From Haliotis rufescens (lineage: Eukaryota): DNA of 64,000 nucleotides. Below, in pieces: positions 10,329 through 56,574 of the stretch. The position numbers were made by a program, and so were the translations under genes. The stretch covers positions 33,232,001 to 33,296,000 of the forward strand of contig NW_025963791.1 of assembly GCF_023055435.1 (NCBI RefSeq), given 5' to 3'. The notes under the pieces were generated by a model. That model had not been told where the DNA came from and did no database searches. It worked only from the letters and a program-made list of their open reading frames with translations. How positions within the stretch are numbered: position 1 is the stretch's first letter; each line of letters opens with the position of its first letter.

Positions 10329-11974
10329 TTAACACCAGTGATACCGATGATTGAAATCATGCAATTGTATCTGATCTCCACCACAAATATACAGTGTGTC
10401 ATGTCTATCGACATACAATCCCCTTGGATCACAGCCAATGTCCTGATGATCTGTGACATAATCCCCTGTCTCTGTCAGCCGTACCACATTGGGGCTGTCT
10501 GCAACCAGGATGTCTCCTGTTGAAGTAGTTGAGATACCGTAAGGTCTGAGTGCTCTGTCTCCGGTAGGGGCGTATCTCCACACAACATCCCCCTCTTACG
10601 TCACACATGTCACAGACTTCTTCCCCCAGTCAGACACGAGTATGTTGCCCTTGTTGTTGACACACATGTAGCCGGGGAAGGTAAACAGTGTCTCATTGTT
10701 GTGTGTAGTGACTGACCTCAGCATGTGTCCCGCCATGTCCAGGATATCAACACAGGCGACACCACCTGCTGCTAGAGATGAAGGACTCAGAACAGCGAGA
10801 CTGTAGTACTCCTTGCTTGTTGTGATGGTTGAGAGCAGCACCAGGTCAGGGGTCACTTCTACTGTTACAATCTGACTGGAGTCAGGGACAGCAACCATCA
10901 CCTGGTTCTCCTTCAACTGTGTTACACCACATGGATGGTCATCCAGGGGAAGTCTACTTTGACATGTCAAGTTGTTTCTGGTGTAGAAGGATTTCACACA
11001 CGTGTTATTTGCGTCAGTGACTACAACTGTCTGTATACCATCTACAAGGAGGACTGTGACGTCACGTAGATCAGGCTCCACTTCATCACCCGCCATCCTC
11101 CCATCTATCTGGTCAACCAGCACTGGAGACGGCAGACATGTGCCCTGATCCTGGTATGTGACGTCAATCTTCCCCAGCTGTAGGTCATCTAGGATGTGCT
11201 GGACGTTGTCAGTGTCAGGTGTAAACCTGATGTCATCTATTCTCGGTGTGTCTGCTGTGTCTGTGTCCCTGACATCCCCCAACTCTACAGCCCCCGACTC
11301 CCAGGCCTGATACGCGTCATACAGGTCCATCTCACAGTCCGATACCAAGGCCTGGTCAATGAACTCACAATGTTGTCTGTACATCTGCATTTCAATCTCT
11401 TGTAGTTTAACATCTGCTTTAAGTTGCTTAGTTTGTTTGTCTGTAATATCCCTGACTTTATTTATCAGCTGTTTTTCTTTCTGCTTGATGTTGGCGATGG
11501 CTCTCTCAACAGCAGATTTGATGTGACGTTCTACTCCAACTTTGTTTTTCTTAATTCTGCCAATTGTCTTGTTTGTTTTCTGAACAATTGTTTGTTTTTT
11601 ATGTACTTTCTTTGATAACTGTTCAGCATTTCTTCTCAAGTGGTATTTCATTGTTGGCATCATTGACTCTATGGTAATGACAGACTCACATTTCCTGTGG
11701 TAAATAACACAACATGTCTGACACACAGCTTTGTGGCAGTCTTTACATACAAGTTTTATAACCTCATCCTTATGTTCCCTGCACATGACCTTGCGTCCCC
11801 TCTTCACCTTGATCTCTCCTGAAAGGTCACAGATATCATGGTCATGTGATGCAGGACTTGCACGATGCATCTTGACACATCTTTCGCAGAGGGACACTTG
11901 ACACTTAGAACACCATGAGGCTCCCGGAGTTGTCTCCCCTAACTTCTCACACACTGAGCAACGTGAAGCGGAAC
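10329..11974 (-). pseudogene. TRIM copy 1 large exon (B-box x2, coiled coil, NHL-like propeller) with premature stop
   Basis: Acceptor ttacag|GTTCC at 11975/11974. TAA at 10598-10596 where paralogs have TCA (Ser), and the frame continues after it. A 30-bp deletion removes the native HEVNFM* end. May encode a C-terminally truncated protein. Confidence 0.85.
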
Positions 11975-12273
11975 CTGTAAGTGGACATGTCTATAGTTAT
12001 TTGACATATCATAACAATATTTATATAAATTAGAAGATTGAGAATCCAGGTAAAATCAACCCCTCTCACCTATTTTCAATGCACGAATAGGGCGATGGGT
12101 GTAGGCTTGGAGTTCAAGTGTTGGCTCGTCACGCCCGTGGGTTTGATGTGTGAAGCCCCATATTGGCATGATTGGCAGTGGCGTAAAACTGAACTCATTC
12201 ACCCAGTTATGTACATGTAGTTTCAACAGCTACAGTTACTCTTACAAGTGAACAGTTTTGATCACGATTTTCA

Positions 12274-12425
12274 CGGGCGGTTGGGAAGCCTTGTGGTTTA
12301 AGTGTTAGCCAGGTTTGATTCCCCACAGGAGTAAAATGTGTGAAGCCCATTTCTTGTGTCCCCGCAGTGATATCTCTGGAACATTGCTGAAGGTCGCAAA
12401 AATACATGCTCACTCACTCACTCAC
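12274..12425 (+). mobile_element. Family A SINE in the TRIM intron (degraded second copy at ~12089-12200)
   Basis: tRNA-like head and actc tail. Same position in the introns of copies 2 (~19960-20128), 4 (~48047-48192) and 5 (~55697-55842). Confidence 0.75.
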
Positions 12426-12835
12426 TATCATCAACCTGAAACATTCTATCATTTACAAATACCCTTTTGATAAACTGCTATTTGTAGATGTTTTCAAATA
12501 ATAATTTTTTCAAGTGCTTTATGGATGATCTGATTATATAAGCATCATGTAAACCGATAATAATCAGCAGGTCAATTAGCATTGCCGATGCACATCGTCC
12601 CGACGTCATAATATATTGTAAATATTTCTATGCAGTGATTACAGTTGGAGTCATGTTTGTAACAAATGTATATTTTCTGGTTTCGTTTAGTGGAGTCAGT
12701 TGGTATCATTGAATATTCTGTTAACAGCAGTACTGTAATTATACTGCATGTTTAAACAAATAATGATTATGATTCTCATTACTAGATATCAGTTTGTGAA
12801 ATGAATGTGCAATTCATAATGTAATAAACCAATAC

Positions 12836-13133
12836 CTGTTTTGACAACGTCAGCTTGAGTGTCAATCAGCCCCTGTATAATGATGCTGGGTTTGATCTGC
12901 CCCGCCCACTCCTCCACTGGCCGGCTGGGGTGGGGGACCTTGGTATCTTGTCGACAGAAGGCACAGGGGATCGTCTTGGACTGTATAGCATCTGGTCTTG
13001 TTTGGATGTATGCAGTGACACATTTCCTGCAGAATGTGTGATCACACCTCAGTGTACAGGGGTCTGTGTACAGTTCCTGGCAGATCACACAGGTGAGGAA
13101 TTCTGTAACTTTCTCAGCTCGTGACGTCGCCAT
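12836..13133 (-). CDS. TRIM copy 1 RING (C3HC4) exon, first coding exon
   Basis: MATS..CVIC..C.H.FC..C..C..C. Acceptor tttacag directly before the ATG and donor CAG|GTATT. 298 nt, phase 1, in frame with the large exon. Confidence 0.9.
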
Positions 13134-13261
13134 CTGTAAAACATAAATAACTGTTCACTTTTCCAAGAAATAATTTCAGCTGAAGTTGTTCCGTCTTTGT
13201 TATGGGGTAACATGTGTTTAGTTTGAGGCAATAACATCTCTTGAGTGCACTTCGGGCTTAC

Positions 13262-13900
13262 CTTCTATATCAAGCTGACACGCGACGATATAACTGAAAT
13301 ACTGTATAACGCGGCATAACACCAAAAGCACTCACCCCGTCAGTAACTTGTGTGCACCACTAAGTATGCTGAAACGCCTCTGTAAATCCATGTCGAATGA
13401 GTTATTTACATATCGTATCTTGTCACAAAAGTAACCATATCGACCAATCCATAGTGCTACAGGAATAACAGATGCTACACAGCGTGACTTCATGTCAAAC
13501 AAGGTGTTTCAGAAGCGTGTGTCTATGTATTTGTTTATACTATTGTTTCAATAAATTATGTTCCTTCATTATAGTTTTTTATGAATTCTGTCATAAGAAC
13601 AAGCTCGATCGTTGTTTCCACACAATAAAGGATTTACCTTGAATAGATGAACCGAAACTGAATATATGAATGAATTGTGATCATGTGAGATGAGATTTGA
13701 TGTCAACTTCTCTCATGTAGATGAGGCGGTAAACTGTCGTCACTGATTCAAAGGCGCATTTGTTTTTATATTAAAAGCTAACTTTAAAACAACTACCAAT
13801 AGGGTCCTGTATTGATGACCTGTAATCCACCTCCGTCAACACCAACCAAGCCTTGCTTTACTGATAATGGACACGCCCCCTCACAGTCACAATACAAGGG
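13262..13900 (-). promoter_or_regulatory. Putative 5' UTR exons and proximal promoter of TRIM copy 1
   Basis: Donor-like sites AAG|GTAAGC (13262/13261) and AAG|GTAAAT (13638/13637), both kept even in the divergent copy 3. GC-box-like CACGCCCCC at ~13872 and CCAAT at ~13796. No transcript evidence. Confidence 0.45.
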
Positions 13901-14081
13901 AGGTAACTGTGAACGTTAGTATTCAGGACCAAGTCAACATATCTTTATTGTGTCATTTTTACACGTCGACGAATGACTGTGTTTACCTGAATATCAAACA
14001 TTTGTAAAACCAATAACAATAAAAGAAATTTAAATCAATATACTTTACATTTTTTTATTACCTTTGGGGCCAACAATTCCT

Positions 14082-14095
14082 ACTTTCGGTTTCTC
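14082..14095 (-). promoter_or_regulatory. IRF-element/ISRE-like motif (copy 1)
   Basis: GAGAAACCGAAAGT on the gene strand. Confidence 0.55.
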
Positions 14096-16567: not shown

Positions 16568-16789
16568 TGACAAATTGTTGTTGAGGGCTGCACTCAGCAT
16601 TATTCCAGCTATGTCTGTAATTAATTGAGTCTGGGCCAGACAATCCAGGGATTGACATCATGAGCATCTACCATGCAAGTCAGTGAGCCTGACCACCCGA
16701 TCCCGTTAGTCGCCTCTTAAGACAAGCATAGCCACCTTTTACAGCAAGCATGGGTTGCTGAAGACCTATTCTACCCCTGATCTTCATGG
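16568..16789 (-). mobile_element. SINE-like dispersed repeat (family B)
   Basis: Reverse complement of 25225-25481. Also at ~24299-24520, ~40112-40305 and ~59790-59985. Confidence 0.7.
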
Positions 16790-17114
16790 CCTAACGTTTG
16801 TTCAGTTTATTCAGAGTAAACTATATCTATTTTACGGTCTCTGATTATGGAGCTGACGCACAAAAATAATTTCATTTTTAGCCAAACACTAACATGGAAT
16901 CACTTACAGTTTATTTTTTGACAATTGAACAATTAAATGTACTATACCTACGACACTATTATAATCATTAGAGATATGAACACAATTACACAATTGTAGA
17001 AGTGTTCCTCCGTACAGGTATGATGCAGGAGCTATTTGTTATTAAGTGGCTCACCATAACGTTCCACAAAACAAACTTCATGACATCACAAATGGAACAT
17101 TCCTACATGGAACA

Positions 17115-18031: not shown

Positions 18032-19659
18032 CTACATGAAGTTGACTTCGTGTATCTGACCGTCTTCACACACATACATTGTGTCATGTCTATCTACATA
18101 CAATCCATATGGATCACAGCCAATGTCTTTATGATCTGTGACATAATCCCCTGTCTCTGTCAGCTGTACAACATTGTTGGTGTCTGCAACCAGGATGTCT
18201 CCTGTTGGAGTAGTTGAGATACCATAAGGGGTGAGTGCTCTGTCTCCAGTAGGGGCGTATCTCCACACAACATCCCCCTCTGACGTCACACATGTCACAG
18301 ACTCCTCATCCCAGTCAGACACGAGTATGTTACCCTTGTTGTTGACACAAATGTACCAGGGGTAGGAGAACAGTGTCTCGTTGTTGTGTGTAGTGACTGA
18401 CTTCAGCACGTGTCCCGCCATGTCCAGGATATCAACACAGTCATATGTACCTGCTGCTAGAGATGAAGGACTCAGAACAGCGAGACTGTAGTAGTCCTTG
18501 CTTGTTGTGATGATAGAGAGCAGCACCAGGTCAGGGGTCACTTCTACAGTTACAATCTGACTGGAGCCAGGGACAGTAACCATCACCTGGTTCTCCTTCA
18601 ACTGTGTTACACCACGTGGAAAGTTATCCAGGGGAAGTTTACTGTGGCATATCAAGTTGTTTCTTGTGTACAAAGATTTCACACACTCGTTCTCCATGTC
18701 AGTGACTACAACTGTCTGTATACCATCTACAACCAGGACTGTGACGTTACGTAGATCAGGCTCCATTTCATCGCCCGCCATCTTCCCATCTATCGTGTCA
18801 ACCAGCACTGGAGATGGCAGACATGTGCCCTGATCCTGGTATGTGACGTCAATCTTCCCCAGCTGTAGGTCATCTAGAGTGTGCTGGACGTTGTCAGTGT
18901 CAGGTGTGAACCAGATGTCGTCTATTCTCCGTGTGTCTGCTGTGTCTTTGTCCCTGACATCCCCCAGCTCTACAGCCCCCGACTCCCAGGCCTGATAGGC
19001 GTCATACAGGTCCATCTCACAGTCCGATACCAAGGCCTGGTCAATGAACTCACAATGTTGTCTGTACATCTGCATCTCAATCTCTTCAAGTTTAACAACT
19101 GCTTTAAGTTCCTTAGTTTGTTTGTCTGTAATATCCTTGACTTCGTTCATCAGTTGTTTTCCTTTCTGCTTGATGTTGGCGATGGCTCTCTCAACAGCAC
19201 ATTTAATGTGATTTTCTACTGCTATTTTGTTTTTCTCAATTCCGCTAATTTTCTCGTCTGTTTTCTTAACAATTGTTTCTTTTCTATGTATTTTCTTTGA
19301 TAACTGTTTAGCATGCCTTCTTAAATAGTATTTCAAGTTTGGCAACATTAACTGAATGGTAACGACAGACTCACATTTTCTATGGTAAACAACACAACAT
19401 GTCTGACACACAGCTTTGTGGCAGTCTTTACATACAAGTTTTATAGCCTCATCCTTATGTTCCCTGCATATGACCTTGCGCCTCCTCTTCACCTTTACCT
19501 CCCTTGAAAGGTCACAGATCTCATGGTCATGTGATGATGGACTTGCACGATGTATCTTGACACATCTTTCGCAGAGGGACACTTGACACTCAGAACACCA
19601 TGAGGCTCCCGGAGTTGTCTCCCCTAACTTCTCACACACGGAGCAACATGAAGCGGAAC
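18032..19659 (-). CDS. TRIM copy 2 large exon: B-box1, B-box2, coiled coil, NHL-like beta-propeller (641 aa with the RING exon)
   Basis: Open frame. CxxC...CxxC....C..C...H....H B-box1 and CREH...CKDC...CQTC...H B-box2. Repeated PxG / ILVSD blades. Canonical acceptor. Confidence 0.92.
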
Positions 19660-20563: not shown

Positions 20564-20861
20564 CTGTTTTGACAACGTCAGCTTGTGTGTCAATCAGCCC
20601 CTGTATAATGATGCTGGGTTTGATCTGCCCCGCCCACTCCTCCACAGGCCGGCTGGGATGGGGGACCTTGGTATCTTGTTGACAGAAGGCACAGGGGATC
20701 GTCTTGGACTGTACAGCATCTGGTCTGGTTTGGATGTATGCATTGACACATTTCCTGCAGAATGTGTGATCACACGTCAGTGTACAGGGGTCTGTGTACA
20801 GTTCCTGGCAGATCACACAGGTGAGGAATTCCATTACTTTGTCAGCTCGTATCGTCGCCAT
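20564..20861 (-). CDS. TRIM copy 2 RING exon
   Basis: Intact C3HC4 RING, 298 nt, GT donor, phase 1. Confidence 0.92.
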
Positions 20862-21814: not shown

Positions 21815-21828
21815 ACTTTCAGTTTCTC
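21815..21828 (-). promoter_or_regulatory. IRF-element/ISRE-like motif (copy 2) GAGAAACTGAAAGT
   Basis: The variant base falls in the spacer, so the consensus is kept. Confidence 0.55.
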
Positions 21829-27849: not shown

Positions 27850-28780
27850 TAAGCTTTGGCCGGACTTACGAAAGTTGAGTATGTCTTGTCCCAGAGAGGT
27901 GCCCCACAAGTTCTCCTAGAAGGCTACACGTTCGCTAAGAACAGGACGAAGAATGAAAATGTGTACTGGAGGTGTGTGAACAGATCTTGCAGTGGCAAGT
28001 GCACCACAGTCAGAGACTACGTTCGCGGCACGTCAGAACACAACCATCCACCTAGTGATGACCGAGCAGTGAGATTTGTCAACGCCATAAGGAAGAAGGG
28101 CATGGAAGAGACAACACCTATGCAGCAAATCTACAACGACCTCATCAGCCAACAGGAGGACGACTTGGTGCCGCATCAAGAGCTGAGGTAGACCTTCCAG
28201 ATCAGTGGACAGCGACACAAGATGGAAGAAGATTCCTGTTGTTTGCTGACGGAGAGGACGACAAGATACTGGCGTACTGCTCCGACGAGGCTCTTGAAGC
28301 ACTGCAGTCCGCAGATAAAATCTTCATAGATGGAACATTCTCTACCTGCCCTCTTCTGTGAAACCAAGTATACATTATTCACGCGATGTCAGGTTCCACA
28401 ATGTACCCTCTGGTCTACACACTCCTTCCAGATCGCCAGAGAGCTACATACACCAGACTCTTCAACCTCCTCAAGACCAAGGTTCAGCAGACCCTCGGCC
28501 GACCCCTAGCTCTATCTGTCATCCAAACAGACTTCGAACTTGCTGCCATTCAAGCTGCCGAGACTGCATTTCCTCAGAATGATGTCAAAGGCGGTCTATT
28601 CCATTTCTGTCAGGCAATATGGCGCAAAACACAAGAACTAGGACTTGCAGTTGCATACAAAGAAGATGTGGAGGTTCGCAAGTGGATACGACGAGCTGTA
28701 GGTCTGGCATTGCTGCCCCTTCTCGAGGTCCAAGATGCCTGGCTTGAAGCCATGAACCAGTGCCCCGACGTGCGCCAATC
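27850..28780 (+). mobile_element. Degenerate MULE (Mutator-like) transposase with FLYWCH zinc finger
   Basis: SQRG...YWRC...C...HNH (FLYWCH). DGTFSTCP, YPLVYTLLP, TDFELA and FHFCQAIWRK (MULE DDE domain). Stops and frameshifts. Confidence 0.85.
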
Positions 28781-29847
28781 TGATAGTTATATACTGCAGG
28801 GATAATTTTAAGCGGTGTTGTGCAAGCGAAGGCTCATCGGCCTCCACATACAAACTAGGTACAGGAGAGGTTCTAAATGATCCAAGACAGAGTCTCAGTC
28901 CTTGATGATGTATGCTATCTAATTTCCCTAAATTACTTTGAGCAGCTCCAGCATATACAATTGAACCATAATCTAGCTTAGATCTAATAAGGGATCTATA
29001 CAGGTGAAGTAAGATTGTCTGATCCCCACGCCACTTAGTATTTGCAACAACCTTTAGTAGATCCGGAACCTTCAAGCATTTAGTTTTAAGATATTTTATA
29101 TGAGGTTAAAATGTCAAATGGCGATCAAAAATAAGACCCAAGAACTTGGTCTCCTCAACAACCTTGATGGGGGCACCGTTTAACAGTAGTTCTGGGTCTT
29201 TATGCGGTCTATAATTTCAACAAAAATGGATACAATTTGTCTTTGCTTTTGAAAATCTAAAACCATTCTCAAGCAACCACTTTTGGATTTTATTTAGGCA
29301 AAGCTGCAGTTGCCTTACTATTGTGTGCATGTTTTTGCCACGACAAGATATGTTGAAGTCATCTACACAGTGTGACCCATCAATTGAGTCATTCAATGCC
29401 TTAGAGAGACTGTTAATTTTAATGCCGAATAATGTGACACCATACTGCCTTGTGGGACACCCTGATCCTGATTGTAATGGTGAGACAGGTTGAACCCACA
29501 CGGACTTGAAATTGTCTGTCGGTTAAAAAACTGGATATAAACCAAGGGAAACGACCCCACAATCCAAAATCATGAAGATCTCTTAAAATGCCATGCTTCC
29601 TAGTTGTATCATAAGCTTTTTCGTAATCGTAAAAAAATGGATACAGCATTTTGTTTGTTTATAATGGAATTCTTATGAACGATTCTAAACGTACCAGATG
29701 ATCAATGGTACTTCTATTTTCCCGGAAACCACATTGTATATCTGTGATGAGATGATTGGTTTCCAAATACCAAACTAATCGATTGTTCACCATACGCTCT
29801 ATAGTTTTGCAAATGCAACTGGTAAAAGATATAGGACGGTTATTAGA

Positions 29848-31272: not shown

Positions 31273-32470
31273 TATACTGAACCAAATTAAAAACTTCACA
31301 ATCCTAAAATTTTAACATTTTGACCAGTTATCATTGTGGGCCCATATTGTGTATTTAAACAGAAATGGCCACGTATTGTCTTCAGATAACACCCGTTTTT
31401 GTGCAGGTGAATCGATCAAAATCATGTGCACAGCACTATAGTGGCAAAAGTGTTTTTTCACGTGCAACTGGTCACGTGGCCATAATACCGTACATGTTTT
31501 CAGCCAAACTTGTTAGCAGTCATTAAAAAAACAAAAAAAACACAAGAAGGCTTTACGGCCATTTGTCATGCCACGCCTTTCTAATGTGCAACGTGAACGT
31601 GCCATCGGCATGTTGCAGACGGGAACGTCCGTAGCTGAAGTCGCAAGGACGATTGGTTGTAGTCGACGGACTGTTTATGATTTACAGACGCGTCTACAGC
31701 AAACGGGTACCACCACTGATCGCCCTCGGCCAGGTCGACCACGTGTGACGTCACATGCAGAAGATCGTCAGATTGTCTTACGGCACCTCCGTAACTGATT
31801 TTTGACGGCTACATCAACCAGAAATGAACTGTTTAGGGGTAGACTGAGTGCGCAAACTGTTCACAACTGTCTGAGAACTGCTCACCTTCAAGCACGACGG
31901 CCATACTGCGGGCCGATTCTGACTCAATTACACAGACGTCAACGTCAATTGTGGGCACAGCAACACGTACGATGAACTCAGGGGAATTGGAATCAAGCCG
32001 TCTTCATTGATGAATCCCGATTTAATCTTCGATTTGCTGATGGTAGGTCGCCGTCATGAACGTTACGCCCAGTGTTGTGTACAGGAAGTTGACAGATTTC
32101 GAGGCGGAAGTGTCATGGTGTGGGGTGCTTTCTGTGGCAATGCACGTTCCAGGCTTTTTGTCATCCGTGGCAACCTCAACGCTGATGCTTACCGCGACCA
32201 GGTACTGGCACCAGAACTTCTGCCTTTTATGGCAGCTCATGGACCCGGTTTGATCTTCCAACACGACAATGCCAGACCCCACACAGCAATTTTGACAAGG
32301 AATTTCCTTCAGAATGTGGGAGTCAACGTCATGGACTGGCCGTCAAGGTCTCCCGACCTCAATCCCATCGAACACGTCTGGGATGCTCTTGGCAGAAGTC
32401 CGCGCACTCTCCAGAACCAACCACAGTATTTGCAAGATCTTGGCACCATTTTGCAGCAACAATGGCAGAT
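31273..32470 (+). mobile_element. Degenerate Tc1-like (DD34E) transposon, 3'-truncated
   Basis: HTH MPRLS...GRPRVTS, FIDESRF, FQHDNARPH and WPSRSPDLNPIEHVW. Premature stops and a frameshift. Starts at a TA. Confidence 0.88.
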
Positions 32471-33739
32471 TAAACATGTTACATTTCCTGACATCACATT
32501 TATCTGTGTTCTTAAGATAGGTTTCTTGTGAACACAAAGCTGATGGTTTAGAATCTTGAATTAAAAGCTGTAAATCATGAAAATTATTTCTATATCCTCT
32601 ACAATTCCATCAAAGTATGTTGGACGATTGAGTCATGGTGGCTCAATCTGCGAACGCTCACGTACACGTGAGGAGGAAGGACTCCTACTTCTGCTCTGTG
32701 ACGATGGTGTTACATCCATGTCCAGAGCATCAAAGGCGTTATGAACAATTATCTCTGAAGATGAGGAGTTCCTGGTTGTCTGATTTCTATTAAGTGTTTT
32801 TCTTTTTCTTTCTTTTCTGGTCAAAGGTTGCATGTCTGGTTCTACAGCATCAGATTCTTTAGTGACAAGCACTTCAGCATCAGACACCGTATTGTCTAGT
32901 TCAGAGAGATTCCATCAGGATACTAGCATCTTAGACTATCAATAGTGTACATCTATACGCATGCGCGGCGTGAGTCCCAGTAAGCCGTCAGCCTGTACAG
33001 ACGTCTCTTAGTATATCAGTAAACAGTGATTAACCAAACCCCGCGTTCGTTATGCAGTTATCAGCTGATACGACAACCTGAGAACATTACAACTGTAATC
33101 ATAGACTTTTTTTATTTGTGGAAAAAATACATTTTGCTCGTGCTGTGTGCAAATGATATTTTTAAATGAACCTATGATTAAGTATGTAACACAAAACAAA
33201 GTAAAACTAATTCATTGAAGTTTTCATTCATCGATTTTATTTGAACTGGAGTCACGGACATATCACGGGCTAGACACTGCGAATTCAAAGCACGTCTCGC
33301 AGGCAGTTCGCTGGTGGGCGTGGGCTAATTTCTATTTATTGTGTCTATAGACGTACACACTTAAAATTCTGGTGTGCATACTTTGCATCAGTCTGCATAT
33401 AAAGTGTGCACCTCCAAAACACAAAAATATATCTCACTCCATAAATGAGTCAACAAAAATAACTTCATACGCTGCTTTGTTAGTCATCAACACAAACCAC
33501 TGTAGACCATACAACATCTGATTTGTTTTACTGGAGCCCAAGCAAAAAGCCCGATATACGTATAAAACGATCTGGTCATGCATACACTGAAGTTGTTTGA
33601 GGCTTTATCTTTACTCAAACATATAGACGTCAGAAGGAATGTGTGCATAGTCAGAAAGAAATGCGAACATTAGAGATTTGTAGTTTTTTTTAACCATGGA
33701 GTTTTATTGTCATTGTCGTTTAACAATATACCCCGTGAC

Positions 33740-33867
33740 NNNNNNNNNNNNNNNNNNNNNNNNNNNNNNNNNNNNNNNNNNNNNNNNNNNNNNNNNNNNN
33801 NNNNNNNNNNNNNNNNNNNNNNNNNNNNNNNNNNNNNNNNNNNNNNNNNNNNNNNNNNNNNNNNNNN
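33740..33867. other. Assembly gap
   Basis: N run. Confidence 0.95.
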
Positions 33868-34068
33868 AACCTTTATATGTCTGTATTTTGGGCCACTGGC
33901 CTCTATACTGAATAATTGTCTTGTCTTGCCTAATGTTATGTGTAATGATGTGAAAATAATGTCTATGGATACACCTTTGTATGATCATTCACATCCCAAT
34001 CGGAAAAGACCATAGTGCATTTAACACCAGCGATAGTGATGATTGAAAGCATGCAGTGGTTGATGTGA

Positions 34069-35696
34069 CTACATGAAGTTGATTTCGTGTGTCTGACCTC
34101 CACCACAAATATACAGTGTGTCATGTCTATCGACATACAATCCATATGGATCACAGTCAATGTCCTGATGATCTGTGACATAATCCCCTGTCTCTGTAAG
34201 CCTTGTAACATTACTGCTGCCTGCAAGCAGGATGTCTCCTGTTGGAGTAGTTGAGATACCATAAGGGCTAAGTGCTCTGTCTCCAGTAGGGGCGTATCTC
34301 CACACAACATCCCCCTCTGACGTCACACATGTCACAGACTTCTTCTCCCAGTCAGACACGAGTATGTTGCCCTTGTTGTTGACACACATGTAGAAGAGGG
34401 GGGCAAACAGTGTCTCATTGTTGTGTGTAGTGACTGACCTCAGCACGTGTCCTGCCATGTCAAGGATGTCAACACAGGCGGTAGTACCTGCTGCTAGAGA
34501 TGAAGGACTCAGAACAGCGAGACTGCAGTAGTCCATGCTCGTTGTGATGGTTGAGAGCAGCACCAGGTCAGGGGTCACTTCCACTGTAACAATCTGACTG
34601 GAGTCAGGGACAGCAACCATCACCTGCTTCTCCTTCAACTGTGTTGCACCACATGGAAAGTTATCCAGGGGAAGTTTACTTTGGCATGTCAAGTTTTTTC
34701 TGGTGTAGAAGGATTTCACACACTTGTTATTTAAGTCAGTGACCACAACTGTCTGTATGCCATCTACAACCAGAACTGTGACGTCACATAGAGCAGGCTC
34801 AACTTCATCACCCGCCATCTTCCAATCTATCGTGTCAATCAGCACTGGAGACGGCAGACACGTGCCCTGATCCTGGTATGTGACGTCAATCTTCCCCAGC
34901 TGTAGGTCATCTAGGATGTGCTGGACGTTGTCAGTGTCAGGTGTAAACCTGATGTCATCTATTCTCCGTGTGTCTGCTGTGTCTGTGTCCCTGACATCCC
35001 CCAACTCTACAGCCCCCGATTCCCAGGCCTGATAGGCGTCATACAGGTCCATATCACAGTCCGATACCAAGGCCTGGTCAATGAACTCACAATGTTGTCT
35101 GTACATCTGCATCTCAATCTCGTCAAGTTTTACATCTACTTTAAGTTCCTTAGTTTGTTTGTCTGTAATATCCCTGACTTCATTCTTCAGTTGTTTTCCT
35201 TTCTGCTTGATGTTGGCGATGGCTCTCTCAACAACAGATTTGATATCCTTTTCTACTGCTATTTTGTTTTTCTCAATTCCGCTAATCTTCTTGTTTGTTT
35301 TCTGAACAATTGTATGTTTTCTATGTATTTTCTTTGATAACTGTTCCGCGCTTTTTCTCAAGTGGTATTTCATAGTTGGCATCATTGACTCTGTGGTAAT
35401 GACAGACTCACATTGCCTGTGGTGAATAACACAACATGTCGAACACACGACTTTGTGGCAGTCTTTACACACAAGCTTTATAACCTCATCCTTGTGTTCC
35501 CTGCACATGACCTTGCGTCTCCTCTTCACCTTGACCTCTCCTGAAAGGTCACAGATTTCATGGTCATGTGATGCTGGACTTGCACGATGCATCTTGACAC
35601 ATCTTTCGCAGAGGGACACTTGACACTCAGAACACCATGAGGCTCCCTGAGTTGTCTCCCCTAACTTCTCACACACAGAGCAACATGAAACGGAAC
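34069..35696 (-). CDS. TRIM copy 3 large exon (B-boxes, coiled coil, NHL-like propeller)
   Basis: Open frame and canonical acceptor. 641 aa spliced. Confidence 0.92.
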
Positions 35697-36647: not shown

Positions 36648-36945
36648 CCGTTTTGACAACGTCGGCTTGTGTGTCAATCAGTCCCTGTATAATGATGCTG
36701 GGTTTGATCTGCCCCGCCCATTCCTCCACTGGCCGGTTGAGGTCAGGGACGTTGGTATCTTGTCGACAGAAGGCACAAGGGATCGTCTTGGACTGTACAG
36801 CATCTGGTCTGGTTTGGATGTACTTGGTGACACATTTCCTGCAAAATGTGTGATCACACCTCATTGTACAGGGGTCTGTGTACAGTTCCTGGCAGATCAC
36901 ACAGGTGAGGAATTCTCTCACTTCCCCAATCTGGGCTGTCGCCAT
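36648..36945 (-). CDS. TRIM copy 3 RING exon
   Basis: MATAQIGEV... intact RING, ttccag|ATG acceptor and G|GTATT donor, 298 nt. Confidence 0.9.
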
Positions 36946-43657: not shown

Positions 43658-43720
43658 CCAACGGCTCAACTTTGCCCAACGGCTCAACTTTGCCCAACGG
43701 CTCAACTTTGCCCAACGGCT
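43658..43720. repeat. 18-bp tandem repeat (ccaacggctcaactttgc), about 3.5 copies
   Basis: Directly visible. Confidence 0.9.
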
Positions 43721-46127: not shown

Positions 46128-48934
46128 CTACATAAAGTTGACTTCGTGTATCTGATCTCCACCACAAACATACAGTGTGTCATGTCTATCTACATACAAT
46201 CCATATGGATCACAGCCAATGTCCTGATGATCTGTGACATAACCCCCTGTCAGCCGTATCACCTTGTTACTGTCTGCAAGCAGGATGTCTCCAGTTGTAG
46301 TAGTTGAAATACCAAAAGGGTCGAGTGCTCTGTCTCCAGTAGGGGCGTATCTCCACACAACATCCCCCTCTGACGTCAGAAATGTCACAGACTTCTTCCA
46401 CGGGTCAGATACGAGTATGTTGCCCTTGTTGTTCACACACATGTACCAGGGTTGGGTAAACAGTGTCTCATTGTTGTGTGTAGTGACTGACCTCAGCACG
46501 TGTCCTGCCATGTCAAGGATATCAACACAGTTGGTAGTACCCGCTGCTAGAGATGAGGGACTCAGAACAGCGAGACTGTAGTATTCCTTGCTTGTTTTGA
46601 TGGTTGAGAGCAACAACAGGTCAGGGGTCACTCCTACTGTTACAATCTTCCTTATGCCAGGGACAGAAACCATCACCTGGTTCTCATTCAACTGTGTTAC
46701 ACGACATGGAGAGTCACCCAGGGTAAGTGTACTGTGGCATGTCAAGTTGTTTCTGGTGTACAAAGATTTCACACACTTGTTGTCGTAGTCAGTGACAACA
46801 CATGTCTGTAAACCATCTGCAACCAGGACTGTGACGTCACGTAGCCCAGGCTCCTCCTTATCACCCACTATCCTCCCATCTATCACGTCAACTCGCACTG
46901 GAGACGGCAGACATGTGCCCTGATCCTGGTATGTGACGTCAATCTTCCCCAGCTGTAGGTCATCTAGGATGTGCTGGACGTTGTCAGTGTCAGGTGTGAA
47001 CCTGATGTCATCTATTCTCGGTGTGTCTGCTGTGTCTGTGTCCCTGACATCCCCCAACTCTACAGCCCCCGACTCCTGGGCCTGATACGCGTCATACAGG
47101 TCCATCTCACAGTCCGATACCAAGGCCTGGTCAATGAACTCACAATGTTGTCTGTACATCTGCATCTCAATCTTGTCAAGTTTAACAACTGCTTTAAGTT
47201 GCTTAGTTTGTTTGTCTGTAATATCCTTGACTTCATTCATCAGCTGTTTTTCTTTCTGCTTGATGTTGGCGATGGCTCTCTCAACAGCAGATTTAATGTG
47301 ATTTTCGACTGCTATTTTGTTTTTCTCAATTCCGCTAATTTTCTCGTCTGTTTTCTTAACAATTGTTTCTTTTCTATGTATTTTCTTTGATAACTGTTTA
47401 GCATGCCTTCTTAAATGGTATTTCAGGTTTGGCAACATTGACTGAATGGTAACGACAGACTCACATTTCCTATGGTAAACAACACAACATGTCTGACACA
47501 CAGCTTTGTGGCAGTCTTTACATACAAGCTTTATAACCTCATCCTTATGTTCCCTGCACATGACCTTGCGTCTCTTCTTCACCTTGACCTCTCCTGAAAG
47601 GTCACAGATTTCATGGTCATGTGATGCTGGACTTGCACCATGCATCTTGACACATCTCTCGCAGAGGGACACTTGACACTCAGAACACCATGAGGCTCCC
47701 GGAGTTGTCTCCCCTAACTTCTCACACACTGAGCAACATGAAGCGGAACCTGTAAGTGGACATGTCTATAGTTATTTGACATATCATAACAACATTTATA
47801 TAAATTAGAAGATTGCGAATCCAGGTAAAATCATCTGCTAACTTATGTTCAATGCACGAAAAGGGCGGTGGGTGTAGGCTTGGAGTTCAAGCGTTGGCTC
47901 GTCACGCCCATGGGTTTGATATGTGAAGCCCCATATTGGCATAATTAACAGTGGCGTAAAACTGAACTCATTCACCCAGTTATGTACATGTAGTTCAACA
48001 GGAACAATTGCTCTTATAAGTGTACAGTTGTGATCACGATTATCACGGGCGATGGGGAAGCGAAGATGTTTTAAGGGTTAGCCAGGTTTGATTCCCTACA
48101 TGAGTAAAATGTGTGAAGCCCTTTTCTTGTGTCTCCCGCAGTGATATCTCTTGAACATTGCTGAAGGTGGCAAAAATACATACTCACTCACTTTAATCAA
48201 CCTGAAACATTCTATCATTACTGATACCCCTTTCTAAAACTGTCATTTGTAGATGTTTTCAGATAATAATATTTTCAAGGGCTTTATGGATGATCTGATT
48301 ATATAAGCATCATGTAAACCGATAATAATCAGCAGGTCAATTAGCATTGCCAGTGCACATTGTCCCGACGTCAAAATATATTGTAAATATGTCTATGCCA
48401 TGATTACAGTAAGAGTCATGTTTGTAACAAATGTATATTTTCTGGAGTCGTTTAGTGGAGTTAATTGGTATCATTGAACATACTGTTAACAGCAATACTG
48501 TAATTATACTGCATGTTTAAACAAATAATGAGTACCCTTAAACATGCCTTCATTACAACCATGATTCTTATTACTAGATTTCACTAGTTTGTGAAATGAA
48601 TGTGTAGTTCATAATGTAATAAACCAATAACGGTACCTGTTTTGACAACGTCAGCTTGAGTGTCAATCAGCCCCTGTATAATGATGCTGGGTTTGATCTG
48701 CCCCGCCCACTGCTCCACTGATCGGCTGGGATGGGGGACATTGGTATCTTGTCAACAGCAGGGAGTGGGGATCGTCTGGGACTGTACAGCATCTGGTCTG
48801 GTTTGGATGTATCCTGTGACACATTTCCTGCAGAATGTGTGATCACACCTCAGTGTACAGGGTTCTGTGTACAGTTCCTGGCAGATCACACAGGTGAGGA
48901 ATTCCGTTACTTTCTCAGCCCGCGACGTCGCCAT
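46128..48934 (-). pseudogene. TRIM copy 4, probable pseudogene (exons 48934-48637 and 47749-46128)
   Basis: TGA at 48754-48752 in the RING exon (CGA/CAA in paralogs) and one RING Cys lost. UTR donor deleted at ~49060 and ~3 kb of promoter deleted. The large exon is still open, with a 6-nt deletion. Confidence 0.85.
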
Positions 48935-50194: not shown

Positions 50195-50354
50195 GTCGGT
50201 CGGGTAGCCTCGTGGTTAAAGCGTTCGCTCGTCACGCAGAAGACTCTGGTTCGATTCCCGACTTGGGTACAATGTGTGAAGCCCATTTCTGGTGTCCCCC
50301 GCCGTGATATTGCTGGAATATTGCTAAAAGCGGTGTAAAATCATACTCACTCAC
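50195..50354 (+). mobile_element. Young full-length family A SINE
   Basis: Intact A and B boxes. 15-bp TSD TATCTATGAGATAGG/TATCTTTGAGATAGG. Empty site at ~40872. Confidence 0.92.
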
Positions 50355-53300
50355 TATCTTTGAGATAGGAGTGAAAAGAAACAGAAAGCAGACAAATAGT
50401 GCAGACTTTTAAAGAAGCTTTGAGCGTCTCTGAAGCATTTTTGGTGGAACTTTCTAAGCCGAATTTCCAAAGTTAACACACCATGTTTATGCTCCTCCTT
50501 GCAAAACATACGTATTTCAACTGAGTCTCTCTAAGTCTCTAACTGAATAACCTTGACCTTGTCCACAACGCTGCCAAGTTCACGTGCACAGCGAACTACA
50601 TTCGCTACACTTTAATATCAGTATGGACATATCTGAGATGTGCCTGCAATGCTTATCATCAGCAATCGGCGTATCGCAAAGTGTCAGCGTTCAAGAATCA
50701 CGCCACGAAAGAGAAATGACAATCCGGGAATGGTGACTGAAACAACCATAATTTGCAAATTGACTGAGGAGTTCCAATAGATATTTTCACTGTTTACTTT
50801 AGCATGGGAAAGTACATTGTATGTGTTTATATCCTAAATCATCAGCAAGGCCTGTTTCCTGATAGACGAAGCCCGTCGAAGGCTGACCATGATGTGAGGT
50901 TTCAAATTTGTTTGTAAACATAGTAAACACGTACATTAGTCACCTGAACTATTTTGGCTCTTAGTTTTACAAGTCGTCACTTCCTTAACCCGTCTTGATT
51001 ATCATGAGTTCGTTTTCGTCAACATATACAGTGAGTCTCTTGTGCAGGATTAATACACTGTCAAAATTTGTTTTCTCAAACACACTCTTATAACATATGT
51101 TATAGACCCTTTGTTATAAATGAAGCTAGAGGCATGTGACTTTCTGACTTTAAAAGTGCAACAATACCCCAACTTTCTGATGCGACGTTAAATTTAAACT
51201 CACTTACTCAGCGGATTCCAATAAGCAAGTCAAACAAGTCAAGATTATAGTCCATTATATGGAAACTCTGAATTTGTGAAGAAAAAGCCATCCTTTTTTC
51301 AATACTTTCAATATTGGAGTGTTGTTCTGCACTCGACAACGTTAGGGCTTAAAGACGAACACAGATATTGGTGAGGCCAGCTGTCACCTATTTTGTTGAA
51401 GTCCAAATGCTTCTGGATATGTTGTTGCTGGTGGCGAATACGTTAGAGACATATAAGATAAGGTTGGCGTGGGTTTGCTTGCATTTTAGCACGTAATGCA
51501 AAAACCTGTTTAGTTGTTTTGTTGTAGTTGTGTATGACGGCACAATGACTTAACCTGTCCCAGACGTGCAGTATTGAGATACATTCCATGACGGATCTGT
51601 GCTACAGGGAGAGTTACGTAAGAACAAGTAAAAAATACAGTGAACAAAAGTTATTATAATTGCATGCACAAATCTAATTGTGCTGCTAGACGTCATATAA
51701 TTGTTCCAGATTCCTTGACCTTGTGCTTTGGTAGAATATTCTCAAAGATTTTCAACAATTAAGATGTCTTTTTCAAACCTAACACTTTGGTTTTAGTGTC
51801 ATGATATACTCATAATATTTCAGACTCATACATTAAACAGGTTGAAAACATAATTCGAACCTGAACAGACAGGTAGATGGCTACTAGGCCTGAGATGAGT
51901 CCAAATTTACTACCCAGGTACCCGACTCCCTATTACCTGACCCAACCCAGGTTCCCGACCCCCTATTACCTGACCCTACCCAGGTACCCTACATCCTGAC
52001 CTGACCCGACCAGGGAACCTGCTGTAGGATTCGAGTAGGGTAGAAAATGCCTGATTAGAAATGTTTTACCGGAGCCCTGGCAAAAACCCTTCAGATACAT
52101 GTATGTACGAACTGATCATGCATACGCTGAAATTGACTGAAGCTTTATTTTTAGTTAGATATATAAATGTCAGAAGGAACACGTGGGGTGTCAGAAAGAA
52201 ATATGACACATTAGTGATTTTCGGTGTAGCCATGGAGTTTTATTGTTATTAAACAATATAGCACGTGACTAACTACGGGTCCGGGTAATCTTGTGGGTGC
52301 CCAGATCCAACCCAGGACCCACCTAACCCAGCCCTAATGGCTAACAAAATAAGTGTATGAGGTGAGATTCTGTTTCCAACCTATTCAGCTGTAAAGAGTA
52401 ATATCAAATGTCTCCAGTGTAAAAAAGTACAACTGACCAGCTTCAGTGGCAGGGAGAAAAGGTATGTCAGTTGATCGTGACGTCATGGTAACCGATGATG
52501 TCACACTGGTCTGCAAAACATTGTGACGCAACTTTAATGTAGCGGTACCTCCTGTGGAATCCAGTTATGGATTAAGAATTTACTTCAATATGTTTTGCGT
52601 TTATGGAGGTGTAAGTACATGACAGACAATGGTATAGGGTCATGCTTTTGTTTGTGAAAAATACATTCTGCTCTTGCTGAGTGTAACTTAACAATATTTA
52701 TTGTGTTTATGGTATAAATCTAAAAAGACTTGTGTCCATACCATGCGTTAATACATTTTACAAGACAACAATAACAACTTCAAAGACTGTCTATTAAGTC
52801 ATAAACACAAACAAAGAGTAGACGATTCAAAATATGACATTGTACAGCTCAATAGTGCAACACAAGATCTGCCAACTCTATTATCAGCCAGTCATGAAAC
52901 AAATCCGAGGGTGTGCGTGGCCTAATGTTTGTTCAGTTTATGCAGAGTAAACTAAATCTATTTCATGGTCTCTGATTATGGAGCTGACGCACAAACATAA
53001 TTTCATTTTTAGGCGAACAATAACATGGAATCACTTACAGTTTATTTTTTGACAATTGAACAATGAAATGAGCTATGCCTACAACACTATTATAATCATT
53101 ATAGATATGGACACAATTACACAATTGTAGAAGTGTTCCTCCGTACAGGTATGATGCAGGAGCTATTTGTTATTAAGTGGCTCACTATAACGTTCCACAA
53201 AACAAACTTCATGACATCACAAACATCCTACATGGAACACCCTATCTACTATCTAGTAAAGTAAAAACGATCTATGACTACGGTGCAATGTACCACGTAC

Positions 53301-53779
53301 CTAACATGCTACTGAATGGACCTGGGACGAGTCCAAATCTACAGCCCGGGTTACCAACCCGACCCGGGAACCCGCTGATGGTCTCAAGATTTGGGAACTC
53401 ATTAGTGTCATTAAAACAGTATATCAAGTGACCATCCACTGGTCCAAGTAGTAAAGTGAGCACTTAAATAACAAGTAAACCATATCATATCTACTAAGAA
53501 TAGAGTGAAGTATTGGTATCTCTTGAGCTGATTGGGATCGAACCACGGGCTTTTCGCCTTCCCGGCCGACACCGTACTTACTAGAACACGGAGGCGATTT
53601 AATAAAGAGAACCAGGTTGCTAAACACATAATGTGATATGTAATGATGTGGAAATAATGTATGTGGATACACCTTTGTATGATCATTAACACCCCAATCG
53701 GAAGAGTCCATTTTGAGTTGTTATAGAGAATTTAACACCAGCGATAGTGATGATTGAAATCATGCAATTATTGATGTGA

Positions 53780-55407
53780 CTACATAAAGTTGACTTCGTG
53801 TATCTGATCTCCACCACAAACATACAGTGTGTCATGTCTATCTACATACAATCCATATGGATCACAGCCAATGTCCTGATGATCTGTGACATAACCCCCT
53901 GTCTCTGTCAGCCGTATCACCTTGTTACTGCATGCAAGCAGGATGTCTCCAGTTGTAGTAGTTGAAATACCATAAGGTCTGAGTGCTCTGCCTCCAGTAG
54001 GGGCGTATCTCCACACGACACCCCCCTCTGACGTCACACATGTCACAGACTGCTCATCCCTGTCAGACACGAGTATATTGCCCTTGTTGTTGACACACAT
54101 GTAGTCGGGGCGTGTAAACAGTGTCTCATTGTTGTGTGTAGTAACTGACCTCAGCACGTGTCCTGCCATGTCCAGGATATCAACACAGTTGGTAGTACCT
54201 GCTGCTAGACATGAGGGACTCAGAACAGCGAGACTGTAGTATTCCTTGCTTGTTGTGTTGGTAGAGAGCAGCACCAGGTCAGGGGTCACCTCTATTGTTA
54301 CAATCTTCCATATGTCAGGGACAGAAACCATCACCTGGTTCTCATTCAACTGTGTTACACGACATGGAGAGTCACCCAGGGTAAGTGTACTGTGGCATGT
54401 CAAGTTGTTTCTGGTGTACAAAGATTTCACACACTCGTTGACGTAGTCAGTGACAACACATGTCTGTAAACCATCTACAACCAGGACTGTGACGTCAAGT
54501 AGCACAGGCCCCCCCTCATCACCCACTATCCTCCCATCTATCTGGTCAACCAGCACTGGAGACGGCAGACATGTACCCTGATCCTGGTATGCGACCTCAA
54601 TCTTCCCCAGCTGTAGGTCATCTAGGATGTGCTGGACGTTGTCAGTGTCAGGTGTAAACCTGATGTCATCTATTCTCGGTGTGTCTTCTGTGTCTGTGTC
54701 CCTGACATCCCCCAACTCTACAGCCCCCGACTCCCAGGCCTGATAGGCGTCATACAGGTCCATCTCACAGTCCGATACCAAGGCCTGGTCAATGAACTCA
54801 CAATGTTGTCTGTACATCTGCATCTCAATCTCTTCAAGTCTAACAACTGCTTTAAGTTGCTTAGTTTGTTTGTCTGTAATATCCTTGACTTCATTCATCA
54901 GCTGTTTTTCTTTCTGCTTGATGTTGGCGATGGCTCTCTCAACAGCAGATTTAATGTGATTTTCGACTGCTATTTTGTTTTTCTCAATTCCGCTAATTTT
55001 CTCGTCTGTTTTCTTAACAATTGTTTCTTTTCTATATATTTTCTTTGATAACTGTTTAGCATGCCTTCTTAAATGGTATTTCAGGTTTGGCAACATTGAC
55101 TGAATGGTAACGACAGACTCACATTTCCGATGGTAAACAACACAACATGTCTGACACACAGCTTTGTGGCAGTCTTTACACACAAGCTTTATAACCTCAT
55201 CCTTATGTTCCCTGCATATGACCTTGCGCCTCCTCTTCACCTTGACCTCCCCTGAAAGGTCACAGATCTCATGGTCATGTGATGCTGGACTTGCACGATG
55301 TATCTTGACACATCTTTCGCAGAGGGACACTTGACACTCAGAACACCATGAGGCTCCCTGAGTTTTCTCCCCTAACTTCTCACACACTGAGCAACGTGAA
55401 GCGGAAC
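53780..55407 (-). CDS. TRIM copy 5 large exon (B-boxes, coiled coil, NHL-like propeller)
   Basis: Open frame and canonical acceptor. 641 aa spliced. Confidence 0.92.
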
Positions 55408-56276
55408 CTGTAAGTGGACATGTCTATAGTTATTTGACATATCATAACAATATTTATATAAAATAGATTGAGAATCCAGGTAAAATCACCCCCTCTCACC
55501 TATTTTCAATGCACGAATAGGGCGGTGGGTGAAGGCTTGGAGATAAAGTGTTGGCTCGTCACGCCCATGGGTTTGATGTGTGAAGCCCCATATTGGCATA
55601 ATTGGCAGTGGCGTGAAACTGAACTCATTCACCCAGTTACGTACATGTAGTTTCAACAGGTACAATTGCACTTATAAGTTCTGATCACTATCATCACGGG
55701 CGGTGGGGAAGCCTTGTGGTTTAAGTGTTAGCCAGGTTTGATTCCCCACATGAGTAAAATGTGTGAAGCCCATTTCTTGTGTCTCCCGCAGTGATATCTC
55801 TGGAACATTGCTGAAGGTGGCAAAAATACATACTCACTCACTTTTATGAACCTGAAACATTCTATCATTACAAATACCCTTTTCATATACTGCCATTTGT
55901 AGATGTTTTCAGATAATAATATTTTCAAGTGCTTTATGGATGATCTGATTATATTAGCATCATGTAAACCGATAATAATCAGCAGGTCAATTAGCATTGC
56001 CAGTGCACATTGTCCCGACGTCAAAATATATTGTAAATATATCTATGCCGAGATTACAGTAAGAGTCATGTTTGTAACAAATGTATATTTTCTGGAGTTG
56101 TTTAGTGGAGTCAATTGGTATCATTGAACATACTGTTAACAGCAATACTGTTATTATACTGCATGTTTAAACAAATAACGAGTACCCTTTAACATGCTTT
56201 CATTACAAACATGATTCTTATTACTAGATATCAGTTTGTGAAATAATGTGTAATTGATAATGTAATAAACCAATAC

Positions 56277-56574
56277 CTGTTTCGACAACGCCAGCTTGTG
56301 TGTCAATCAGCCCCTGTATAATGATGCTGGGTTTGATCTGCCCCGCCCACTCCTCCACTGGCCGGCTGGGGTCGGGGACCTTGGTATCTTGTCGACAGAA
56401 GGCACAGGGGATCGTCTTGGACTGTACAGCATCTTGTCTGGTTTGGATGTACCCTGTGACACATTTCCTGCAGAATGTGTGATCACACCGCAGTGTACAG
56501 GGGTCTATGTACAGTTCCTGGCAGATCACACAGGTGAGGAATTCAGTCACTTTCTCAGCCCGTGACGTCGACAT
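56277..56574 (-). CDS. TRIM copy 5 RING exon
   Basis: Intact C3HC4 RING, 298 nt, canonical splice sites. Confidence 0.92.

Follow-up and report, generated by a model that had tools for sequence, protein, structure and literature searches.

The window analysed here is a stretch of 64,000 nucleotides (nt) from Haliotis rufescens (G000:C13:33232001-33296000; the species agrees with the identity to RefSeq proteins), and it carries a tandem array of genes encoding RING, two-B-box, coiled-coil and NHL proteins of the TRIM type. A six-frame listing of open reading frames (ORFs) gave five long ORFs on the minus strand, of 452-535 codons, each lying about 870 nt 3' of an ORF of about 115 codons. A preliminary description of the window, made from its letters, had proposed five paralogs together with the flank of a sixth. 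All five are present on the minus strand, and they are numbered here by increasing position. The exons and the features that belong to them are as follows, UTR standing for untranslated region.

1..1172, minus strand: 5' flank of the sixth paralog (promoter/5'UTR-exon region), a 90% match to 58132-56956 of the copy-5 unit.
10329..11974, minus strand: copy 1 main exon (B-box 1, B-box 2, coiled coil, linker, NHL propeller); ORF 10596-11954.
12836..13133, minus strand: copy 1 RING exon, 99 codons plus 1 nt, phase-1 donor, C3HC4 intact.
18032..19659, minus strand: copy 2 main exon, intact; ORF 18032-19639, propeller about 18035-18811.
20564..20861, minus strand: copy 2 RING exon.
33740..33867, no strand: assembly gap of 128 N, about 200 nt 3' of the copy 3 TAG (34069-34071).
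34069..35696, minus strand: copy 3 main exon, intact; ORF 34069-35676, propeller about 34072-34848; identical to RefSeq P0016 (641 amino acids).
36648..36945, minus strand: copy 3 RING exon.
46128..47749, minus strand: copy 4 main exon, open, 533 codons; ORF 46128-47729, propeller about 46131-46901.
48637..48934, minus strand: copy 4 RING exon remnant, with an in-frame stop and the last zinc-ligand pair disrupted.
53780..55407, minus strand: copy 5 main exon, the numbering reference; ORF 53780-55387, exactly RefSeq P0001 (641 amino acids).
53783..54559, minus strand: copy 5 six-bladed NHL propeller, residues 277-535, 24 strands (AlphaFold2, Foldseek).
56277..56574, minus strand: copy 5 RING exon.
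57584..57706, minus strand: copy 5 5'UTR exon (3' end 57584, donor GT; covered by RNA-like contigs up to 57706).

Residue numbers below refer to the ORF of copy 5, in which residue r occupies window positions 55387-3r+1 to 55387-3(r-1). The short (RING) ORF ends at a phase-1 donor (AAAACAG/GTATTG), and the acceptor of the long ORF (CTTACAG/GTTCCGC) lies 20 nt before its first GTG. Removal of the intervening 869-nt GT..AG intron (55408-56276) joins exons 56277-56574 and 53783-55407 into a product that equals, residue for residue, a 641-amino-acid H. rufescens protein named 'tripartite motif-containing protein 3-like' in RefSeq (P0001). This junction was compared exon by exon in a script, and separate exons were used for the database searches.

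A 5'UTR exon is indicated upstream, because an acceptor sits directly before the ATG at 56574. RNA-like contigs cover 57587-57706 and end at the CAG/GT donor at 57584, from which they run on into the beginning of the RING exon; a single contig links the 5'UTR exon with a RING-exon start. In three transcriptome-size runs, the coverage of the copy-5 unit by contigs of at least 97% identity falls on the exons, with almost none on intron or intergenic DNA. A 1-Gb DNA-like run, by contrast, covers the entire unit. Among the contig matches listed, no joint spans the intron between the RING exon and the main exon. The family is transcribed and spliced, and this claim is made at the family level because the contigs are only 80-270 nt long and the paralogs 85-99% alike. 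At window positions 56293-56297, about 20 nt before the RING-exon donor, several contigs in the three RNA-like runs leave the copy-5 sequence and continue with unrelated letters; these loose ends may represent diverged paralogs or an alternative junction.

Each gene begins with a 5'UTR exon, followed by the RING exon; a single large exon then encodes both B-boxes, the coiled coil, a short linker and the six-bladed NHL propeller. Pfam recognised zf-C3HC4 in the short ORF (E = 1.7e-8) and, in the long ORF, zf-B_box at residues 55-87 (32 bits against a cut-off of 24), preceded by an ANCHR-like B-box at residues 10-41 that scored below cut-off. In copy 5 the B-boxes span about residues 10-87, the putative coiled coil about 96-215 (Lys/Glu-rich and proline-poor), the linker 216-276 and the propeller 277-535. 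With Pfam alone the NHL domain was sub-threshold in copies 1 and 5 (16.7-18.6 bits against 20). With phmmer, the last 266 residues matched NHL domains in the PDB, those of TRIM3/TRIM2 (E = 1e-11), TRIM71 and Brat, over a range of 1e-11 to 7e-5. The AlphaFold2 model, built from a 62-sequence alignment (A1), has six four-stranded blades, with an N-terminal strand closing blade 6 (mean predicted local distance difference 96.5, predicted template-modelling score 0.93). Its best PDB matches in Foldseek were the NHL domains of Thin, TRIM2, TRIM3, Lin41, Mei-P26, Brat and TRIM71, with template-modelling scores of 0.77-0.81; identity to solved NHL domains is 13-18%. The register of the NHL motif, in which FxxPxG precedes strand A and DxxNx follows strand B, is consistent with the alignment to TRIM3. 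Only about 60-70 residues separate the coiled coil from the NHL domain, and no filamin/Ig domain was found between them by Pfam at E <= 0.01 in the 535-amino-acid exon product.

Two of the five copies carry defects that the preliminary description had overlooked. In copy 1, a TCA has become an in-frame TAA at codon 453 (10596-10598), where the C4-D4 bottom loop begins, directly behind strand C4 of blade 4. Its C-terminus is also altered by a 6-nt insertion, with the stop shifted to 10329, so that the boundary at 10329 given in the preliminary description can be reached only by readthrough of the TAA; RefSeq models the gene as a truncated protein of 558 amino acids (P0026). In copy 4, the RING exon is interrupted by an in-frame stop, and TPCC* replaces CAFCR, by which a zinc ligand is lost, and from its sequence this copy is likely a pseudogene or the source of a RING-less product. 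With two of five copies (1 and 4) looking like pseudogenes, the family is of the birth-and-death kind. The assembly gap near copy 3 has no bearing on the finding: it is crossed by none of the array's reading frames, it lies outside all coding sequence, and unit homology around copy 3 already stops at 33931, before the gap. The non-coding flanks of the copy 3 unit have diverged from those of the other units.

The array extends beyond the window. The main exon of the sixth paralog lies upstream of the window start (G000:C13:33228851-33230455, L004), its body 1.5-3.1 kb before it. A six-frame search of the whole 1.33-Gb assembly returned 810 first-look candidates, 81 of which were scored. In a cluster of about 500 kb (C13:32.83-33.32 Mb) there are at least 35 copies at 70% identity or more, 30 of them at 78% or more, all on the minus strand. 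Outlying copies include three at 42.54 Mb, sub-families of 60-66% identity at 30.3-32.5 Mb, and others of 46-49% identity on other contigs. The best 120 database matches were all from Haliotis species, and related arrays occur in the proteomes of H. cracherodii, H. rubra and H. asinina. The abalone genes are already known in the sense that RefSeq annotates them under automatic names (TRIM2/3/56/71-like). For Aplysia, only 22 TRIMs have been reported (PMC9334734).

Turnover is visible among 30 paralogs that were aligned. The C3HC4 motif of the RING (C-x2-C...C-x-H-x2-C-x2-C...C-x2-C) is intact in 29 and broken in copy 4; 24 main exons are open over 535 codons, and a stop or frameshift occurs somewhere in six paralogs. 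Some pairs of copies show just 0-4 differences over 1605 nt despite a separation of 170-380 kb. For example, the main exon of copy 2 (L008, window 18032-19639) differs at 4 of 1605 nt from one 184 kb away (L007, C13:33065784-33067388), and their RING exons differ more; L024 and L025 form a second near-identical main-exon pair, of the 170-185 kb separation class and likewise with 4 differences in 1605 nt, again with RING exons less alike. This suggests recent segmental duplication, conversion, or assembly duplication of haplotypes. Copies 4 and 5 are mosaic relative to each other, with 0-1 differences in some stretches of 100-150 nt and 19 in others. The family evolves by birth and death, with exchange between copies.

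The near-identical pairs, in abalone genomes that are highly heterozygous, would fit an artefact of assembly, in which haplotypes were collapsed or expanded and the 'paralogs' are partly alleles of fewer genes. We regard this as very improbable. The copies of the window differ from each other by 9-18% at the protein level and are spaced 8-16 kb apart, their intergenic transposon content is distinct, and the arrays recur in the three other Haliotis proteomes; even if some copies are alleles, the substitution pattern described below is unaffected. The spacers differ in transposon content in that two fragments, both identified by Pfam, lie between copies 2 and 3: one at 27856-28805 (plus strand) with a FLYWCH zinc finger and a MULE transposase domain, and one at 32007-32531 (plus strand) with a Tc1/mariner-like DDE_3 endonuclease.

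The paralogs differ in short patches of the propeller. Those quoted in the preliminary description are found as written in the translations of copies 1 to 5: VTD-ANNT/MENE/LNNK/YDNK/YVNE, LF-TFPGY/SYPWY/APLFY/TQPWY/TRPDY, SD-WGKK/WDEE/WEKK/PWKK/RDEQ, AAG-GVA/TYD/TTA/TTN/TTN, VP-DSSQ/GSSQ/DSSQ/GIRK/DIWK and AL-x-P. The codon alignment of the 30 paralogs has 536 columns, including one indel column. Propeller sites were classed from DSSP strand order alone, ignoring variability, into D-A and B-C loops (75), A-B and C-D loops (39) and strands (144). By antiparallel topology, the D-A and B-C loops share one face, conventionally called 'top', and the A-B and C-D loops lie on the opposite face ('bottom'). 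NHL domains with a solved structure bind their ligands at this top opening of the propeller (PMC9634614, PMC5908797).

Variation is concentrated in the top loops. Among 27 propeller columns with at least five residue types, 24 fall in a top loop and three at strand ends, and none of the 39 bottom-loop positions is among them (Fisher odds ratio 28 for top-loop clustering, p = 9e-12). Each of the 12 top loops holds at least one such column, and the N-terminal 276 residues hold only one in all. The preliminary description had also placed the variable residues on one face, and indeed, of the 21 sites with a posterior of at least 0.95, the D-A and B-C loops hold 19 and the A-B and C-D loops none, the remaining two being at strand ends. 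The hypervariable or selected residues of copy 5 are the following.

Blades 1-2: 286, 292, 295 (D6-A1); 315, 316 (B1-C1); 339-343 (D1-A2); 358, 360 (B2-C2).
Blades 3-4: 382, 384 (D2-A3); 398-400 (B3-C3); 425, 426, 428 (D3-A4); 443-446 (B4-C4).
Blades 5-6: 470 (D4-A5); 486-488 (B5-C5); 511 (D5-A6); 525-527 (B6-C6).

The signature formed by the 24 hypervariable residues is unique in 28 of the 30 paralogs, so that nearly every paralog would present a binding surface of its own.

Nonsynonymous (dN) and synonymous (dS) divergences estimated by the Nei-Gojobori method were 0.037 and 0.156 in the B-box region, 0.067 and 0.176 in the coiled coil, 0.055 and 0.091 in the linker, and 0.121 and 0.166 in the propeller. 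The RING, B-box and linker half had been called nearly invariant; it is less variable than the propeller, but with a dN of 0.04-0.07 against 0.12 it is not invariant. The picture of a constant E3 half with a variable propeller holds, as the C3HC4 motif is intact in all but one paralog, the dN/dS ratio (omega) of the N-terminal half is 0.47, and dS is similar across domains. Gene conversion as the main cause of N-terminal constancy is rejected on the similar dS of B-box, coiled coil and propeller. In the linker (window about 54560-54742), dS is about half that of the flanking domains; gene conversion may have homogenised the copies locally there, or the nucleotide sequence itself may be constrained.

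Because recombination among the 30 paralogs is significant in a test of the pairwise homoplasy index (PHI) type (p < 0.001), rates were estimated on separate trees for alignment segments and complemented with a tree-free test. The codon models gave the following values.

Top loops, GY94-F61: omega 1.39 (p = 0.003 against omega = 1).
Top loops, MG94-F3x4: omega 1.45 (p = 0.0009 against omega = 1).
Top loops of blades 4-6, MG94-F3x4: omega 1.90 (p = 0.0002).
Top loops of blades 1-3: omega 1.25, not significant.
Bottom loops, both codon models: omega about 0.6.
Strands, both codon models: omega about 0.6.
N-terminal half: omega 0.47, as above.

In the tree-free test, the ratio of nonsynonymous to synonymous differences per site (pN/pS) over 15 phylogenetically independent pairs was 1.28 for top loops (bootstrap confidence interval 0.95-1.76) and 0.46-0.65 for the other classes. 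On the intact copies only, an approximate comparison of models M1a and M2a gave likelihood-ratio test (LRT) statistics of 130 (blades 1-3) and 248 (blades 4-6) and put about 10% of sites in a class with omega 5-8. A posterior resembling that of FUBAR, an empirical-Bayes method, was dropped since it scored invariant sites at 0.93, and only the site-wise LRTs of that run, similar to the fixed-effects likelihood (FEL) method, were kept.

At the patches named in the preliminary description dN/dS was expected to be raised, and it is: the 24 hypervariable top-face codons have an omega of 2.96 (LRT 42; synonymous rate alpha 2.08, nonsynonymous rate beta 6.14), and all other propeller codons 0.68. Because these codons were chosen by their variability, the value was calibrated against neutral simulations that used the same tree, a gamma shape of either 1.0 or 0.5 and 40% neutral sites, and from each of which the 24 most variable columns were taken. 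Neutral omega was 1.0-1.14, with a maximum of 1.58, and the maximum LRT was 6.0 in 80 replicates; the observed value is outside all of them.

Several points weigh against selection on the top face. The confidence interval of the tree-free test includes 1 for the top loops, and without seven pseudogene-like or duplicate rows the top-loop omega drops to 1.24 (p = 0.07). At the hypervariable codons the synonymous rate is raised too, for which older lineages, conversion tracts or multi-nucleotide (multi-hit) changes could account. The codon models were written for this analysis as grid approximations with fixed branch lengths, and are not those of PAML or HyPhy, and recombination can inflate the LRTs of site models, an effect that segment trees lessen and do not remove. 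The near-identical 'paralogs' 170-380 kb apart could be haplotype duplications in the assembly. Placement on 'one face' rests on strand topology rather than on measured distances. Finally, the number of variable columns (27) is little above that of neutral simulations (16-23), and because of this the case rests on the placement of the variable columns and on omega.

Some of these points would equally be expected if constraint had only been relaxed, so that the loops of recently amplified, partly decaying duplicates drift at omega near 1 and values above 1 arise from recombination, multi-nucleotide mutations and post-hoc choice of sites. The six pseudogene-like copies, the recombination, the near-neutral count of variable columns, a class-level omega of only 1.24-1.45 with a tree-free interval touching 1, and the raised alpha all agree with such drift. 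However, the bottom loops are equally exposed and yet have an omega of 0.6 and no hypervariable column; the hypervariable set exceeds, under the same selection rule, the neutral maxima of both omega and LRT; the great majority of main exons remain open and the N-terminal half is under constraint; and a wrong tree would inflate synonymous and nonsynonymous counts equally. We therefore judge relaxation alone to be quite unlikely. Evidence for diversifying selection is good at about 20-25 top-face positions and only moderate for the top loops as a whole class. The evolutionary part of the earlier interpretation, a recognition surface in the course of diversification, is thus supported by the omega contrasts and by the one-face placement.

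Outside the propeller, a sliding window showed pN above pS (0.084 versus 0.043) at coiled-coil residues of about 111-140 (window about 54968-55057), and the coiled-coil sites E160, Q177 and V181 are among the few with a FEL-like p < 0.05 and beta > alpha. Selection on paralog-specific dimerisation could produce this signal.

The chemistry of the top face bears on the type of ligand. Counted from the residues rather than computed electrostatically, the top loops carry a net charge of -12 to 0 across the 30 paralogs, acidic in all but one, which is neutral. Trp is over-represented 6.2-fold at the hypervariable positions, and Phe, Arg, Gly, Asp and Tyr are enriched there as well. The RNA-binding NHL domains of Brat and LIN-41 use a basic pocket or surface (PMC5908797). 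Because the top face is net acidic where the RNA pocket is basic, a protein or other non-nucleic-acid ligand seems more likely than RNA, as far as the residue composition can tell. The preliminary description had taken Brat and LIN-41 as its precedent for the ligand-binding face; the acidity argues against RNA binding in their style (PMC5908797).

A diversified repertoire need not be an immune one. The paralogs might control endogenous substrates or mRNAs, each its own, as do Brat, LIN-41 and TRIM2/3/32, or might restrict the transposons of the abalone itself; every characterised TRIM-NHL protein among the fold and sequence matches is a developmental or neuronal regulator, and transposon fragments (FLYWCH with MULE, DDE_3) lie between copies. 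Regulators of endogenous substrates, however, are normally single-copy and conserved, whereas hundreds of tandem copies with omega above 1 on the binding face are a signature of antagonistic co-evolution. The acidic face also mismatches the basic RNA pocket of LIN-41 and Brat (PMC5908797), and restriction of transposons would itself be a conflict-driven defence, so that it overlaps with the immune interpretation. As context only, oyster TRIM genes are among the loci linked to survival of herpesvirus (PMC9437489). On balance we hold a non-immune purpose to be rather improbable.

Two further features of the window lie outside the genes. On the plus strand, a 181-codon ORF at 5144-5689 consists of about 14 tandem units resembling 'YPTPYYLTLPK'; it has no Pfam match and is probably a translated minisatellite. 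At 62069-63990 there is a strongly skewed simple repeat of low GC content (0.28), TG/CA-rich and reading as Cys-Val repeats, with four N gaps (62069-62219, 62313-62482, 62645-62811 and 63777-63928).

Among known systems, the TRIM-NHL proteins (TRIM2, TRIM3, TRIM32/Thin, TRIM71/LIN-41, Brat, Mei-P26, Wech) have the same layout of RING, B-box, coiled coil and six-bladed NHL domain and give the best matches in sequence and fold. They are encoded by one to four conserved genes and have a basic, conserved top face, whereas the abalone genes exist in hundreds of tandem copies and have an acidic, hypervariable one. The abalone family falls outside class VII of the TRIM-NHL proteins (TRIM2/3/71) because it has no filamin/Ig domain. 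TRIM32, which also has none, is closer in layout, but the abalone proteins have two B-boxes. The positively charged top surface that marks the RNA-binding NHL group (Brat, LIN-41) is not found in the abalone family. Vertebrate antiviral TRIM56 is similar in its RING, B-box, coiled coil and NHL-like C-terminus, and several abalone genes are named 'TRIM56-like' by RefSeq, a name that need not mean orthology. There is only one copy of TRIM56, and it needs RNA binding for its antiviral action (PMC6623546).

In evolutionary pattern, the family resembles TRIM5alpha/TRIM22 of primates and finTRIM/btr of teleosts. These are likewise tandem TRIM E3s with a conserved half made of a RING, a B-box and a coiled coil, selected surface loops in the recognition domain, and birth and death with pseudogenes. 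Positive selection in their C-terminal recognition domain, on which this comparison is based, was reportedly described by Sawyer in 2005 and van der Aa in 2009. Subject to the reservations on method and recombination given above, the abalone array shows the same combination of positive selection in surface loops of the recognition domain and a tandem birth-and-death array. It differs in that the diversified domain is an NHL beta-propeller and not B30.2/PRY-SPRY, in its gastropod lineage, and in that an antiviral role is here only a candidate. The family context of TRIM5/TRIM22 and finTRIM is given elsewhere (PMC3137616, PMC3845644). The F-box and MATH-BTB adapter expansions of nematodes and plants are also large, lineage-specific tandem ubiquitin-ligase families in which positive selection is confined to the substrate-binding domain; they are cullin adapters, and differ from the abalone TRIMs in ligase class and folds. 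According to Thomas in 2006, they may target pathogen proteins. Earlier work has described large TRIM repertoires in molluscs and, in oysters, TRIM loci that are linked to survival of herpesvirus (PMC9437489). In a full-text literature search we found no paper on abalone TRIM-NHL diversification, nor any that describes a hypervariable NHL top face with omega > 1 in a tandem array of TRIM genes.

The explanation that we favour, with a confidence only a little better than even, is that of a diversified TRIM-type E3 family with a selected top face, probable protein targets and an arms race behind it; the same joint estimate covers the description of the family as Haliotis-specific, massively expanded TRIM-type RING E3 ubiquitin ligases. 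Under this explanation, the catalytic and oligomerisation half would be kept by purifying selection, and the 12 D-A and B-C loops, two per blade, would form a ligand face on which some 20-25 residues are replaced faster than synonymous sites. Each paralog would use its top face to bind a target of its own, probably a protein. The ligase would dimerise through its coiled coil, and the RING would attach ubiquitin to the target held on the propeller or to itself, with degradation or signalling as the outcome. The repertoire would be renewed by duplication, gene conversion, pseudogenisation and diversifying selection. By analogy with TRIM5 and finTRIM, the driver would most likely be an arms race with intracellular parasites, whether viruses, intracellular bacteria or transposon proteins. 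E3 activity, the type of ligand and any immune role are what we infer rather than observe; a function as candidate immune receptors is plausible, and pathogens may have driven the selection. More tentatively, and with less than even confidence, the family may be a germline repertoire of hundreds of intracellular E3-ligase 'receptors', in which an NHL propeller carries 12 loops resembling complementarity-determining regions and serves to ubiquitinate pathogen or transposon proteins. Such a repertoire would be a fold-independent molluscan counterpart of TRIM5/finTRIM or of plant NLRs.

To our knowledge, molluscs are without adaptive immunity, yet they survive heavy exposure to viruses and bacteria. 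Abalone fisheries are affected by herpesvirus and withering syndrome. The 20-25 defined positions provide a handle for loop-swap, pull-down and association studies, including markers for disease-resistance breeding. If the favoured explanation is true, the array is a concrete candidate for specific intracellular recognition in a lophotrochozoan, and the TRIM design of a constant E3 with a variable sensor would have evolved a second time, on NHL instead of SPRY.

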